A stretch of 64,000 nt of DNA from Macrostomum lignano (GCA_002269645.1 NIVC01002608.1:1-64000); one strand, 5' to 3'; counted from the first letter of the stretch, positions 14,048-20,398 are shown. Numbers and translations are program-made. The notes: generated from the sequence alone by a model not told the origin.

Positions 14048-15004
14048 ATGGGCGATGAAGTCCGACAGCCAGACTCTCTGCTGCAACTCATCGCTGACGT
14101 CATCTCAGAGCAGACAGCCGAAGACTGCAGGCGGCAGCTCCAAGACGCCTCACGACACCTCAGGATGCCTCTGACGGGACTGGCCGTCGTGTCCGTGGCG
14201 GCAGCTCGACATCCTGAGTTCGCCGCCTTCGCCGCGAGGTTCGAGTCGCTCTCGGGCTGCGCGGACGCCGTCCGGACAGCCGAGCGCGGCTTCTTCCGCG
14301 ACGCCGCCAGCCCGGAGCGGCTCGTCTGCTTCCACTGCACCGCCGAATGCTCAGGGAGTCCGACGGCCGCCGCCACCGCTGAGCACCGCGACGGCTGCGC
14401 GCTGTCGAGGCTCGACCGCCTTCTCGGCCAGCCTAGCAACGGTTGCCTAGCAACGGAGGCAGCCAGAGCCGAAGCCACGCTGCGACAGCTGAGGCAGCTG
14501 CTGGCCCGGCCGGCGGTGCCGCTCGCCGAGTCCTTCGGCTTCCAGCGAAACCTGCTGGCCTGGGCGCTCGCCCGCAACCTGCTGGGTCCGGACGGCGGCG
14601 CGCCGGCCGACAGGACCGGCCACCTGCTGCGGCTCGCCAACCTGTGCGAGGCCGTCTTCCGACAGTCCGCCCACCTGCTGCGCCGGCCGCCGCTCGAATC
14701 GCTGCTGCTGGCGGCCGCCACTGACGCATCCGACGGTCCCTCGGCTGCTCCAGCAGCTGATGAGGCGCCGCTCCGCTCACCGCAGCGCGCAGCCTCCCCG
14801 CCGCCGCCAGCTGCGACCCCGGCGAGAGGCTTCCAGGTGGACGGAGACGACCGCTGCTTGACGTGCCGCGGCCGGCAGCGAAGCCGCGTCCTGCTGCCGT
14901 GCGCGCACCTCGCCGTGTGCGACGCCTGCCTTGACGGTGCCGGCAGCCGCTGCCCCGCCTGCGGAGCCGCTGCGCTGGCCTCCGTCAGGGCCTTCATCTG
15001 CTGA
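14048..15004 (+). CDS. IAP-like protein copy 1 (degenerate BIR, UBA-like, C-terminal RING), single exon, 318 aa
   Basis: HPEFAAFAARFESL...RGFF...VCFHC-x15-H-x3-C is BIR-like; ESFGFQRNLLAWAL resembles the cIAP UBA motif (EMGFSRSLV); CLTC...LLPCAHLAVCDAC...CPAC...AFIC* is an IAP-type RING at the extreme C-terminus. Confidence 0.8.
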   Translation: MGDEVRQPDSLLQLIADVISEQTAEDCRRQLQDASRHLRMPLTGLAVVSVAAARHPEFAAFAARFESLSGCADAVRTAERGFFRDAASPERLVCFHCTAECSGSPTAAATAEHRDGCALSRLDRLLGQPSNGCLATEAARAEATLRQLRQLLARPAVPLAESFGFQRNLLAWALARNLLGPDGGAPADRTGHLLRLANLCEAVFRQSAHLLRRPPLESLLLAAATDASDGPSAAPAADEAPLRSPQRAASPPPPAATPARGFQVDGDDRCLTCRGRQRSRVLLPCAHLAVCDACLDGAGSRCPACGAAALASVRAFIC

Positions 15005-15529
15005 CTTAATCGAAGTTCAACTCCTTAGAACTTTTTCTTCTTTTTTTGGACAACTAGCGTACGTTTTTTATAAAACCTTTTAGTTTGCATGCAACGCCAA
15101 CTCTAAGCAAACACCAAAAAATCCGATTTTCTGACTTCTAATTTGTACTGTCTGAGATTGACTTAAAATCACTGCCTTTCAAATGAATAATGATTTTGAG
15201 TAGTTTTTCTTTTTCCTAAGGCGTTACTTTTTACTGCAGCATTTTTACTTCTTTTAAATATTTTAAGTTGAGAATTACATGCTTTAGATTTTTTACCTCA
15301 CTGCCAGGCCAGAGCTCAATTGTCTATCAAAAGTGGTTGGTATGAGCATTGAGTCGTCTAGCTGTGCTCACGTACTCTGATGTGTGGTAAATTTTAATTA
15401 ACGCTAGTACAGACTTAGGTAAAATTTGGTATGCTGCTAGCTAGCTGTACAATTGTACAATTGTAAGTGTACGTGCGGAATTACCTCTGTAAGGGGGGCA
15501 GAGAAAAAGAGCAGAAAGGGGTTAAATGT

Positions 15530-16095
15530 TAGAGAAAGGGGGGAAATAGAGTGAGAGAGTGGGATAGAGAGAGTAGGAGATAAGGAGAGGGAGAAATGAA
15601 GAGGGAGAAATGAAGAGGCAGATAGGGAGAGTGAGATAGTAAGAGGGAGACAGGGAGGAATAGAGAGGGAGATAGGGAGAGGGAGATAGGGAGAGGGAGA
15701 CAGGGAGATTGAGAGAGAGATAGGGAGAGGGAGATAGGGAGAGGGAGATAGGGAGAATAGAGAGGGAGATAGGGAGAATAGAGAGGGAGATAGGGAGAAT
15801 AGAGAGGGAGATAGGGAGAATAGAGAGGGAGATAGGGAGAATAGAGAGGGAGATAGGGATAATAGAGAGGGAGATAGGGAGAATAGAGAGGGAGATAGGG
15901 AGAGGGAGATAGGGAGAATAGAGAGGCAGATAGGGAGAATAGAGAGGGAGATAGGGAGAGGGAGGTAGGGAGAGGGAGATAGGGAGATAGGGAGAGGGAG
16001 GTAGGGAGAGGGAGATAGGAAAGAATAGAGAGGGAGATAGGGATAGGAAGATAGGGAAGAATAGAGAGGGAGATAGGGAGGAATAGAGAGGGATT
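15530..16095. repeat. Polypurine tandem repeat (GAGAGGGAGATAGGGA(GAATA))n
   Basis: Directly visible. Confidence 0.95.
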
Positions 16096-16539
16096 TAGAG
16101 CCTGAATGCGACTTATAATTTTAACGAATTTATGCCTTCACTCACCTTGCAATATGCACAATAACTTGAAGACTTAAGAACCAGTAAAAGTTCAAGTGGC
16201 TCCTCCGTAAATACTTGTCAGATCTCTTTCAGTGTTAAATTTAGCTCAGGGCCAATACAGTAACAGCTGGGACAGAAAAATACTTTACAGGAAATACAAA
16301 TTTACTTGCTAAGTTGAGCCGAAAAAATATTTTGTTTTTATGGATGATACATTGTTGTTTTTCTGGGGCATTACTGTGTCGGCCTGACCATATTCCCTAT
16401 CCAGATCTTGTCAGGCTTACTGCTTCCGTAGCTTTAAATAGAAGCAAATAAGGTCACTCTCGAAGACACACAGGACATGTAGTCAAGAAGCTTCAACAGG
16501 GACTTCTGCACAAAAATTGGCAGTCGGGGCCAACCACCA

Positions 16540-17683: not shown

Positions 17684-18236
17684 CAGACAAACAGACAGAC
17701 AGACAGACAGACAGACCGAAGGACAGACAGACAGACAGACAGACAGACAGACAGACAGACAGACCGAAGGACAGACAGACAGACAGACAGACAGACAGAC
17801 AGACAGACAGACAGACAGACAGACAGAAGGACAGACAGACAGACAGACAGACAGACAGACAGACAGACAGACAGACAGACAAACAGACAGACAGACAGAC
17901 AGACAGACAGACAGACAGACAGACATGCAGACAGACAAACAGACAGACAGACAGACAGACAGACAGACAGACAGACAGACAGACAGACAGACAGACAGAC
18001 AGACAGACAGACAGACAGACAGACAGACAGACAGACAGACAGACAGACAGACTGACGGAGAGACAGACAGACAGACAGACAGACAGACATGCAGACAGAC
18101 AGACAGACAGACAGACAGACAGACAGACAGACAGACAGACAGACAGACAGACAGACAGACAGACAGACAGACAGACAGACAGGCAGACAGACAGACAGAC
18201 AGACAGACAGACAGACAGAGAGACAGACAGGGACAG
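17684..18236. repeat. (GACA)n microsatellite
   Basis: Directly visible. Confidence 0.98.
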
Positions 18237-18329
18237 ATAAATTAAACCAACGTTTTTTGCTTTTGTCTGTTTCCTACGAGACAATCCGACCGCATGTTTT
18301 CTTGAGTATTTTTTTTCTGGCTGCTTTCA

Positions 18330-20398
18330 TCAGCAGATGAAGGCCCTGACGGAGGCCAGTGCGGCGGCTCCGCAGGCGGGGCAGCGGCTGCCGGCACCGT
18401 CAAGGCAGGCGTCGCACACGGCGAGGTGCGCGCACGGCAGCAGGACGCGGCTTCGCTGTCGGCCGCGGCACGTCAAGCAGCGGTCGTCTCCGTCCACCTG
18501 GAAGCCTCTCGCCGGGGTCGCAGCTGGCAGCGGGGAGGCTGCGCGCTGCGGTGAGCGGAGCGGCGCCTCATCAGCTGCTGGAGCAGCCGAGGGACTGTCG
18601 GATGCGTCAGCGGCGGCCGCCAGCAGCAGCGATTCGAGCGGCGGCCGGCGCAGCAGGTGGGCGGACTGTCGGAAGACGGCCTCGCACAGGTCGGCGAGCC
18701 GCAGCAGGTGGCCGGTCCTGTCGGCCGGCGCGCCGCCGTCCCGACCCAGCAGGTTTCGGGCGAGCGCCCAGGCCAGCAGGTTTCGCTGGAAGCCGAAGGA
18801 CTCGGCGAGCGGCACCGCCGGCCGGGCCAGCAGCTGCCTCAGCTGTCGCAGCGCGGCTTCGGCTCTGGCCGCCTCCGTTGCTAGGCAACCGTTGCTAGGC
18901 TGGCCGAGAAGGCGGTCGAGCCTCGACAGCGCGCAGCCGTCGCGGTGCTCAGCGGTGGCGGCGGCCGTCGGACTCCCTGAGCACTCGGCGGCGCAGTGGA
19001 AGCAGACGAACCGCTCCGGGCTGTCGGCGTCGCGGAAGAAGCCGCGCTCGGCCGTCCGGACGGCGTCCGCGCAGCCGGAGAGCGACTCGGACCTCGCGGA
19101 GAACGCGGCGAACTCAGGACGTTGAGCTGCCGCGACCGCGACTATGAGGAGGCCTTTTGTGATAGATAGATTTCTTCTATTACGTTTATTTGTGGGTGGC
19201 ATTGACTGGCTATTGGGTTTCGTGTTGACACTTGAGTGGCATGGGGAGGGTCCAACACGTCCAACCCAGAGTCCCTGAGATCGATTCAAAACACTGACGA
19301 AATTAGATGGACCCTTGTCCAATAAAGACAAATGAATAGGCGGACAGACAGACGGACAGACAGACAGACAGACAGACAGACAGACAGACAGACAGACAGA
19401 CAGACAGACAGACAGACAGACAGACAGACAGACAGACAGACAGACAGACAGACAGAGAGACAGACAGACAGACAGACAGACAGACAGACAGACAGACAGA
19501 CAGACAGACAGACAGACAGACAGACAGACAGACAGACAAACAGACAGACAGACAGACAGACAGACAGACAGACAGACAGACAGACAGACAGACAGACAGA
19601 CAGACAGACAGACAGACAGACAGACAGACAGACAGACAGACAGACAGACGGACAGACAGACAGACAGACAGACAGACAGACAGACAGACAGACAGACAGA
19701 CAGACAGACAGACAGACAGACAGACAGACAGACAGAGAGACAGACAGACAGACAGACAGACAGACAGACGGACAGACAGACAGACAGACAGACAGACAGA
19801 CAGACAGACAGACAGACAGACAGACAGACAGACAGACAGACAGACAGACAGAGAGACAGACAGACAGACAGACAGACAGACAGACAGACAGACAGACAGA
19901 CAGACAGACAGACAGACAGACAGACAGACAGACAGACAGACAGACAGACAGACAGACAGACAGACAGACAGACAGACAGACCGAAGGACAGACAGACAGA
20001 CAGACAGACAGACAGACAGACAGACAGACAGAGAGACAGACAGACAGACAGACAGACAGACAGACAGACAGACAGACAGACAGACAGACAGACAGACAGA
20101 CAGACAGACAGACAGACAGACAGGCAGACAGACAGACAGACAGACAGACAGACAGACAGACAGACAGACAGACAGACAGACAGACAGACAGACAGACAGA
20201 CAGACAGACAGACAGACAGACAGACAGACAGCTACTAGCTAACTCAATATCAAAAAGGTGCCTCACCTGTGACCGCCGCCAGCAACCGCTGCCTGTTTGG
20301 GGAGTCTTCGGCTAAGCCGTGTGCTGTCGCGATATCTGGAGAAATGACGGCTTTTAGCAGCTGCTGGAGTTCGGCAAGATTTGAATCTGCTCTGCCAT
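18330..20398 (-). CDS. IAP-like protein copy 2 (BIR-UBA-RING), two exons 20267-20398 and 18330-19153
   Basis: Exon 2 is about 95% identical in protein to copy 1. Donor ACAG|GTGAGG at 20266 and acceptor CACAAAAG|GC at 19154 are phase-compatible. Exon 1 (LQQLLKAVIS) is homologous to copy 1 LLQLIADVIS and needs one extra base near 20388 to join the ATG at 20398. Confidence 0.75.
19341..20231. repeat. (GACA)n microsatellite filling most of the intron of IAP copy 2
   Basis: Directly visible. Confidence 0.98.

Follow-up and report, generated by a model that had tools for sequence, protein, structure and literature searches.

Probable gene conversion across most of exon 2 in a tail-to-tail pair of IAP-like BIR-RING genes of Macrostomum lignano, one copy of which lost an ancestral intron

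Arm-to-arm gene conversion in inverted duplicates is known from the palindromes of the human Y chromosome and from the inverted Hsp70Aa/Ab pair of Drosophila, and the precise loss of introns is explained in the Fink model by recombination of a gene with its reverse-transcribed mRNA. In IAP/BIRC proteins, the zinc ligands of the canonical BIR domain are spaced C-x2-C-x16-H-x6-C. Among molluscs, oysters are reported to have expanded their IAPs in a lineage-specific manner, with novel architectures and some members that lack introns (PMC8917759). Here, we analyze a 64,000-nt stretch of the genome of the flatworm Macrostomum lignano (GCA_002269645.1 NIVC01002608.1:1-64000; the whole stretch is referred to as the window), in which two IAP-like genes, the intronless copy 1 and the spliced copy 2, face each other tail to tail. 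We consider it likely that the two genes are old paralogues, that copy 1 lost the ancestral intron, and that gene conversion later ran across most of the coding part of exon 2.

Copy 1 (14048-15004, plus strand) is a single intronless open reading frame (ORF) of 318 codons that encodes a 318-aa BIR-like protein with an IAP-type RING and is uninterrupted through the conserved intron position (MPLT-G-LAVVSV). Copy 2 lies on the minus strand and consists of exon 1 (20267-20431), a 1113-nt phase-1 intron (19154-20266; GTGAGG...AAAAG), and exon 2 (18330-19153). The join between 20267 and 19153 falls within a Gly codon, in phase 1 (AAVT/G/LLIVAV), and the same junction is used by the GenBank protein PAA72002.1 (P0076), which is encoded on a colinear M. 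lignano contig; an alternative acceptor (CATAG/) 12 nt downstream, giving an exon start at 19141, is used in the predicted proteins P0001 and P0088. Most of the intron is a (GACA)n array of 889 nt at 19343-20231, as delimited with Tandem Repeats Finder. The two genes form an inverted repeat (14195-15004 and 19136-18330) that aligns over 810 nt at 96.8% identity with a single 3-nt indel, and the proteins are 93.8% identical over 275 aa in tblastn. The repeat breaks off precisely at the TGA of each gene, past which nothing can be aligned. In these respects, the original prediction, made from the DNA of the window, was accurate: it had described a tail-to-tail inverted pair, one copy reading through the intron position and the other with a 1113-bp, mostly (GACA)n intron that splits a Gly codon, about 95% protein identity over the part matching exon 2, and an end of similarity at the stop codon.

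The extent of this near-identity is the central observation. Within the tract at 14198-15001, copy 1 and copy 2 differ by nine synonymous and 13 non-synonymous changes, and the proportions of synonymous (pS) and non-synonymous (pN) differences are 0.040 and 0.023, respectively. By contrast, the seven codons directly upstream (14177-14197, plus strand; codons 44-50), which are the first after the ancestral intron position and encode GLAVVSV in copy 1 vs GLLIVAV in copy 2, differ at 10 of 21 nt with a saturated pS of 0.86. Identity in a sliding 60-nt window likewise steps from 43% to 70% and then to 90-100% before falling to 58% and 31% across the stop codon, so that divergence is far from uniform along the coding sequence. 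The expectation that near-identity is limited to exon 2 was thus borne out as to its confinement but not as to its start, which lies at 14198, 21 nt inside the exon, rather than at the junction. One could imagine that no exchange took place and that strong purifying selection held exon 2 constant while exon 1 was free to diverge, in keeping with the poor conservation of the N-terminal segment in the family. This explanation has a negligible probability: synonymous sites barely differ within the tract (pS 0.04), yet are saturated in the adjoining seven codons, and the linker, which is disordered in the AlphaFold (AF2) model (predicted local distance difference test score, pLDDT, <50 at residues 231-265), is as similar between the copies as the folded domains. 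Because pS steps from 0.86 to 0.04, recent sequence exchange is left as the sole explanation.

We compared the window with a second locus, L001 (GCA_002269645.1 contig NIVC01001121.1), which matches window positions 30000-6300 (minus strand) colinearly at 92-98.5% identity, including the adjoining ABCA-type transporter and the repeat-rich spacer, and carries both copies in the same tail-to-tail order. The L001 orthologue of copy 1 (15143-14190, minus strand) also has 318 codons, its protein is 99.4% identical to that of the window, and the frame is intact at both loci. The spliced copy of L001 has exons at 10001-10166 and 10788-11698 and a 621-nt intron with the same GTGAGG...AAAAG ends. The spacer between the stop codons of the window (15005-18329) consists mostly of tandem repeats (15555-16093, 16849-17319, and (ACAG)n at 17683-18230), its two sides share no similarity with each other, and it is colinear with the L001 spacer while being 749 nt longer owing to repeat-length differences. 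Two long (GACA)n arrays on the same strand, at 17683-18230 just past the copy 2 stop and at 19343-20231, bracket exon 2 of copy 2; their L001 counterparts measure ~183 and 397 nt, so that both are strongly length-polymorphic. The genome paper (PMC5730564) bases the GenBank gene models on a genome-guided transcriptome and reports, for the DV1 line, additional large chromosomes whose non-repetitive blocks with >=95% identity amount to 180 Mb. The window and L001 versions may be alleles, homeologues, or copies on duplicated chromosomes. UniProt holds predictions of both locus types (P0088, window-type; P0001, L001-type). That the second arm is an artefact of assembly, i.e., a mis-joined haplotype or a collapsed repeat, is a thought invited by a repeat-rich, partly duplicated genome and by the long microsatellites that bracket the arms. 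We regard it as highly improbable, because the independently assembled colinear contig repeats the arrangement, with both copies oriented alike and set in matching unique flanks and spacer; moreover, the arms differ at 16 fixed sites and one codon indel common to both loci, and the 5' coding sequence that adjoins each arm is unique to it. The second copy is therefore not a mis-assembled haplotype.

A different account of the step in divergence would dispense with conversion altogether: a recent partial inverted duplication, limited to the stretch between a point shortly within exon 2 and the stop codon, would have landed downstream of unrelated sequence that by chance came to serve as exon 1 and intron, creating a chimeric copy 2. 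In line with this idea, nucleotide similarity is absent outside the tract, as the 5' coding parts upstream of the junction share nothing beyond chance 9-11-mers and the flanks are likewise without similarity; the pairwise similarity of the N-terminal protein parts, which had been described as weak, is not above chance, because 1065 of 5000 shuffles reach it; and the reading frame of copy 2 is intact in neither locus. However, when compared with a profile of the N-terminal segments of seven other family members, the first 43 residues of copy 1 were beaten by 7/1000 shuffles and the peptide of copy 2 exon 1 by 6/1000, so that both exceed ~99.3% of shuffles, and the peptide of copy 2 therefore scores as a family N-terminus. 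What had been called weak N-terminal similarity thus holds against the family profile and not between the two copies. In addition, phmmer aligns copy 1 with its relatives starting at residue 11-13, the copy 2 intron sits exactly at the family's conserved position and phase, and the seven saturated codons between intron and tract can still be aligned, so that homology exceeds the near-identical block. Finally, a random duplication that ended precisely at the stop codon would be a coincidence. Altogether, we find a chimeric origin of copy 2 quite unlikely. Because the N-termini are of the family type and the saturated codons can be aligned, both genes were full-length family members before exon 2 was homogenised, and this favours conversion over a partial duplication. 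The predicted restriction of later gene conversion to exon 2 of old paralogues is therefore upheld by the pS step together with the family-type N-termini of both copies.

Based on these data, our working model is that one or more non-reciprocal, intrachromosomal exchanges between the inverted copies overwrote nearly the whole coding part of exon 2 of one gene; we infer both the direction and the number of these conversions. The converted tract would comprise 14198-15004 on the plus strand (arm A, encoding the BIR-like core, helical middle region, linker, and RING) and 18330-19133/19136 on the minus strand (arm B, within exon 2 of copy 2). The limits of the tract would lie where they do because usable homology ends there: on the 5' side it would stop 21 nt short of the heterology between intron and no intron, and on the 3' side at the stop codon or no more than 30 nt away from it, the old 3' flanks past that point being unrelated. 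The last exchange would predate the split of the window and L001 versions. Fixed paralogue differences are denser at the 5' end of the tract (eight in the 150 nt at 14198-14347 vs eight in 657 nt plus the indel at 14348-15004; Fisher p = 0.004), which suggests at least two nested conversion events or tracts of different age. The GC content of the tract is 74% (84% at third codon positions); coding parts outside the tract reach 58-61%, exon 2 of paralogues 54-67%, and the flanks 36-44%. This fits GC-biased conversion without proving it. The locus resembles the Y-chromosome palindromes and Hsp70Aa/Ab in its inverted arms, its near-identity through non-reciprocal exchange, its sharp boundaries, and the raised GC content of the tract. 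Unlike in those systems, the arms are just 0.8 kb long and span the coding part of one exon in paralogues that are otherwise saturated, and the pair shows no exchange since the two sequenced locus versions split.

Next, we consider the intron. A phase-1 GT-AG intron in the codon just before a hydrophobic helix is present in P0076, P0003, P0010, P0086, and P0004, as established by exact reconstruction of the spliced coding sequence for the first four and by inspection for P0004; the peptides that follow it are LLIVAV, IVLMII, CLILTL, CLIFVA, and HLLRLL, respectively. Because these five paralogues are divergent (~20-35% identical to copy 1) and share the intron position, the ancestral gene carried the intron, and its loss from copy 1 was exact. 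Thus, of the scenarios originally offered, i.e., an old retroposition or a gain or loss of the intron, loss in copy 1 stands, gain in copy 2 does not, and retroposition is disfavoured. The ancestral family gene would have had a single intron, in phase 1, directly ahead of the hydrophobic helix on the N-terminal side of the BIR region, and copy 2 would have kept it and later seen it filled by (GACA)n. In copy 1, the likely route of loss would be recombination with a reverse-transcribed spliced mRNA, although a precise genomic deletion is also possible. Exact removal of a single ancestral intron with the frame kept, in a genome rich in reverse transcriptase, matches the Fink model; unlike in that model, the lost intron was the 5'-most and only one rather than 3'-biased, and the mechanism here is one that we infer.

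We also considered that copy 1 could be a processed retrocopy that landed beside its parent and was later partly homogenised. Copy 1 does lack the ancestral intron precisely, a second intronless family member (P0005) exists, and long terminal repeat (LTR) elements bearing reverse transcriptase occur in the window and make up ~21% of the genome (PMC5730564). Against this, there is no A-run after the copy 1 stop codon or in the downstream 500 nt and no obvious target-site duplication; copy 1 is merely 3.3 kb from copy 2, in a tail-to-tail arrangement that is conserved in both loci; and its 5' coding part is as far from copy 2 as from distant paralogues, so that any retroposition would have to be ancient, with its hallmarks erased. 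We therefore judge a retrocopy unlikely, and in-situ loss in copy 1 is favoured over classical retroposition because copy 1 lies so close to copy 2, lacks a poly(A) remnant, and has no nucleotide similarity to exon 1. With regard to P0005, it belongs to a head-to-tail array at 3001-7012 of another locus (L003), where it is followed within 4 kb by at least two more family members; the family thus also forms tandem arrays.

The two genes differ in the state of their reading frames. The original prediction placed the start of copy 2 at the ATG at 20398, but this ATG is not in the frame of the splice donor, in which a TGA at 20408-20406 is followed by no ATG. The copy 2 protein of L001 begins MRPSTATSAAQHGRADSNL (MRPSTATS), and the corresponding ATG in the window is at 20431-20429, which is out of frame with the rest of exon 1 because, compared with L001, a single base is missing from the window between 20407 and 20406 (CCAGTG-AGCGCAG vs CCAGTGCAGCGCAG); as a result, the ORF from the ATG at 20431 runs into a stop after 25 codons. 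Met codons are entirely absent from exon 2 of copy 2. In L001, copy 2 is disrupted by another 1-nt deletion, which lies in a run of C within the RING at the position aligning with copy 1 coordinate 14953 (~18381 in copy 2 of the window), and PAA72002.1 therefore ends ...CPPAEPPHW... and continues into the 3' flank. P0088 switches frame where the 1-nt deletion of the window falls, consistent with the deletion being present in a second data set, unless the window itself was drawn from that set. In M. lignano, the spliced leader is 35 nt long and ends in ATG (PMC8629364), and a missing genomic ATG is therefore no proof of a dead gene: a trans-spliced copy 2 mRNA could acquire its start codon from the leader. 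A candidate trans-splice acceptor, gcgcag/CATGGC, is located at 20399-20406 (minus strand), and joining there could restore an in-frame start; the site is a poor fit to the reported [T/C]TNCAG motif.

To follow the evolution of the copies since the loci split, we compared four sequences, i.e., copies 1 and 2 of the window (W1 and W2) and of L001 (L1 and L2). The tract contains 16 fixed paralogue substitutions (six synonymous and ten non-synonymous) and one codon indel. Private changes number six in W2 (three synonymous, three non-synonymous), 12 substitutions (three synonymous, nine non-synonymous) plus the frameshift in L2, two in L1, and none in W1. Between the window and L001, the copy 2 tract differs at 18/807 sites (2.23%; non-synonymous to synonymous, N:S, count 12:6) and the copy 1 tract at 2/807 (0.25%) against a background of 1.65% that was measured over 7.5 kb of non-coding DNA around them; the value of copy 2 does not differ from this background (p = 0.25), and that of copy 1 is lower (p = 4e-4). 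Because its divergence proceeds at the background rate and each locus has a different frameshift, copy 2 is probably decaying and a putative pseudogene, and copy 1 is probably the working gene. As claimed at the outset, most differences between the copies alter amino acids (13/22 in the tract). Nevertheless, pN/pS between copy 1 and copy 2 is ~0.56 in the tract, and N:S counts (pN/pS ~0.5-0.8) never depart from the neutral expectation and give no sign of diversifying selection; they are compatible with neutrality or mild constraint. From the earlier suggestion of relaxed or diversifying selection, relaxed constraint is retained as plausible for copy 2 only.

Several observations weigh against parts of this interpretation. 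No site among the four tract sequences groups the copies by locus, which would mark conversion after the split; therefore, no conversion is detectable since the loci separated, and ongoing conversion is not demonstrated. As described above, the pairwise N-terminal similarity does not exceed chance, and the homology of both N-termini to the family is modestly significant and appears at the level of the profile. The predicted splice of copy 2 is taken from the transcript-based GenBank model of the L001 locus. With respect to copy 2 being in decay, that its gene model is based on transcripts and that a spliced leader may donate an AUG both point the other way, and both copy 2 frameshifts could be indel errors of assembly, the one in L001 lying in a C-run. 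Lastly, divergence is also low in the 3' non-coding flank of copy 1 (3/536; vs coding sequence p = 0.39), and the low divergence of copy 1 may thus be partly a regional effect and not purifying selection.

At the protein level, the pair had been described as BIR-UBA-RING. In Pfam, copies 1 and 2 match the RING alone (zf-C3HC4_3, 9.5e-09, above the gathering score), and the best matches of the RING in PDB are those of cIAP2, cIAP1, and XIAP, aligned through the C-terminal tail to the last residue. The Pfam BIR model finds no match in copy 1 or copy 2 individually, even at E <= 10. It (PF00653) is matched individually by 5/13 family members (best E 2.2e-4), and with a family profile of aa 44-135 all 60 listed PDB matches are BIR proteins, led by NAIP (7.5e-15) and including XIAP (~1e-08) as well as survivin, DIAP1, BIRC6, and cIAP1. 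The residues G81, C94, C97, H113, and C117 are invariant in the family. The spacing of the zinc ligands in the pair is C-x2-C-x15-H-x3-C, in which the three residues from H to C are fewer than in relatives and fewer than the six of the canonical BIR. The AF2 model has a mean pLDDT of 73 (~90 over residues 10-220) and contains strands 82-84, 91-94, and 100-102 together with helices in the BIR region; its top three Foldseek matches are XIAP BIR3, but these are weak (E 0.14-0.46; template modelling score 0.41-0.50). The middle region (SFGF...RPGDLI) is confidently helical (pLDDT 84). Its profile (aa 136-232) finds nothing in PDB below E 0.5, its domain model has no Foldseek match below E 4.7, and none of the 13 members matches the UBA family in Pfam at E <= 1. 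A UBA in this region is therefore supported neither by Pfam nor by PDB profile or fold, and the idea of any other known fold was likewise rejected; just a helix-FGF-helix motif resembles UBA. Accordingly, the IAP-type RING of the original description stands as it was, the BIR does so at the level of the family profile only, and the UBA does not. The architecture is an N-terminal helical segment, a divergent BIR zinc module, the helical middle region, a disordered linker, and the C-terminal RING, and both proteins appear to be divergent single-BIR proteins with an IAP-type RING and are presumably E3 ubiquitin ligases.

An exhaustive phmmer search returned 75 matches, and every one of those looked up that covers more than the RING is an M. 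lignano protein, the best full-length match being PAA72002.1 from L001. The family is a lineage-expanded set of small IAP-like proteins of M. lignano. Like XIAP, cIAP1/2, ML-IAP/BIRC7, and DIAP1, its members have a C-terminal RING, which is closest to those of cIAP2, cIAP1, and XIAP, including the tail after the last zinc ligand, and, as in IAP/BIRC proteins, the upstream module shows the pattern R..S(F/L) ... A..GF ... C-x2-C ... H ... C. Unlike in IAP/BIRC proteins, the BIR of this pair is too divergent for Pfam and lacks the conserved Trp after the second Cys, the family has two further conserved parts, an N-terminal helical segment and the helical SFGF...RPGDLI region without a detectable relative, and full-length relatives, among the matches looked up, were found solely in M. 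lignano. Like the IAPs of oysters as reported (PMC8917759), this is an expanded, fast-evolving BIR-RING family with tandem clusters, such as the head-to-tail array of L003. Compared with the oyster proteins, the M. lignano family belongs to a different phylum and has a much more divergent BIR.

The GenBank annotation (Mlig_3_7) has no gene model for the L001 orthologue of copy 1 at 14190-15143 (minus strand), and exact-sequence look-ups of the window proteins returned no record. A word-indexed protein search with aa 1-135 of copy 1 retrieved solely copy-2-type predictions (P0001 and P0088), none of which has the copy 1 N-terminus; the same search with full-length copy 1 gave no matches, probably because it was swamped by Ala-rich words. 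Two long antisense ORFs, one of 321 aa opposite copy 1 (14032-14997, minus strand) and one of 262 aa opposite copy 2 (18337-19125, plus strand), were rejected as genes; they have no domain support and are by-products of the 74% GC content. In the spacer, the minisatellite at 16849-17319 has a 15-nt unit, (CCCTGGTGCTAAAGC)n, one frame of which reads as PGAKA/PGAGA repeats in ORFs of ~100 aa; it is probably non-coding.

Elsewhere, the window contains exons of an ABCA-type transporter (ABC2_membrane_3 and ABC_tran; 4108-9520, plus strand), colinear with and 98.5% identical to a 1951-aa gene of L001, an NSD-like PHD/PWWP ORF (36876-38324, minus strand), a retroelement aspartyl protease (49527-50858, minus strand), a weak GT29 sialyltransferase-like ORF (57951-58943, plus strand), and a reverse transcriptase/RNase H ORF of an LTR retrotransposon (61544-62818, plus strand). 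Minisatellites with periods of 12-47 nt and arrays of up to 1.4 kb are dense in the window (20968-22356, 24154-25029, 35933-36834, 38815-39932, 58033-58783, and others), and their density fits the reported 15% of simple and tandem repeats in the M. lignano genome.

The processes involved are well known, and we regard this case as clean and tidy but ordinary, neither surprising nor one that changes a general principle. What is new are the polarity of the intron change as a loss, the true boundaries of the tract, the broken frame of copy 2, the intact and unannotated copy 1, and a BIR recognised at profile level. We have also asked whether the arms could be more than a by-product, with copy 2 serving beside a functional copy 1 as a transcribed conversion cassette with a broken frame, as donor or as acceptor (a reservoir of variants or a repair partner), or with the 0.8-kb arms forming a double-stranded RNA hairpin that feeds small-RNA regulation of the family. 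Both ideas derive from the geometry of the locus alone, the hairpin needs convergent read-through of the 3.3-kb spacer, and we give them a slim chance. For work on M. lignano, the consequences are practical. The public annotation names the spliced copy, whose frame is broken in both versions, and leaves out its intact intronless neighbour; knock-down, expression, or proteomic work would therefore target or count the wrong paralogue. Because the copies share 97% of 0.8 kb, cross-mapping of reads and RNA interference probes is to be expected. The locus offers a compact case with clear limits in which conversion restricted to an exon is combined with precise intron loss in a flatworm, and it could help to calibrate the length of conversion tracts and GC-biased conversion in a hidden-polyploid genome. 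It also exposes a very divergent BIR-RING family that has expanded in Macrostomum and whose members standard domain scans label 'RING-type' only.

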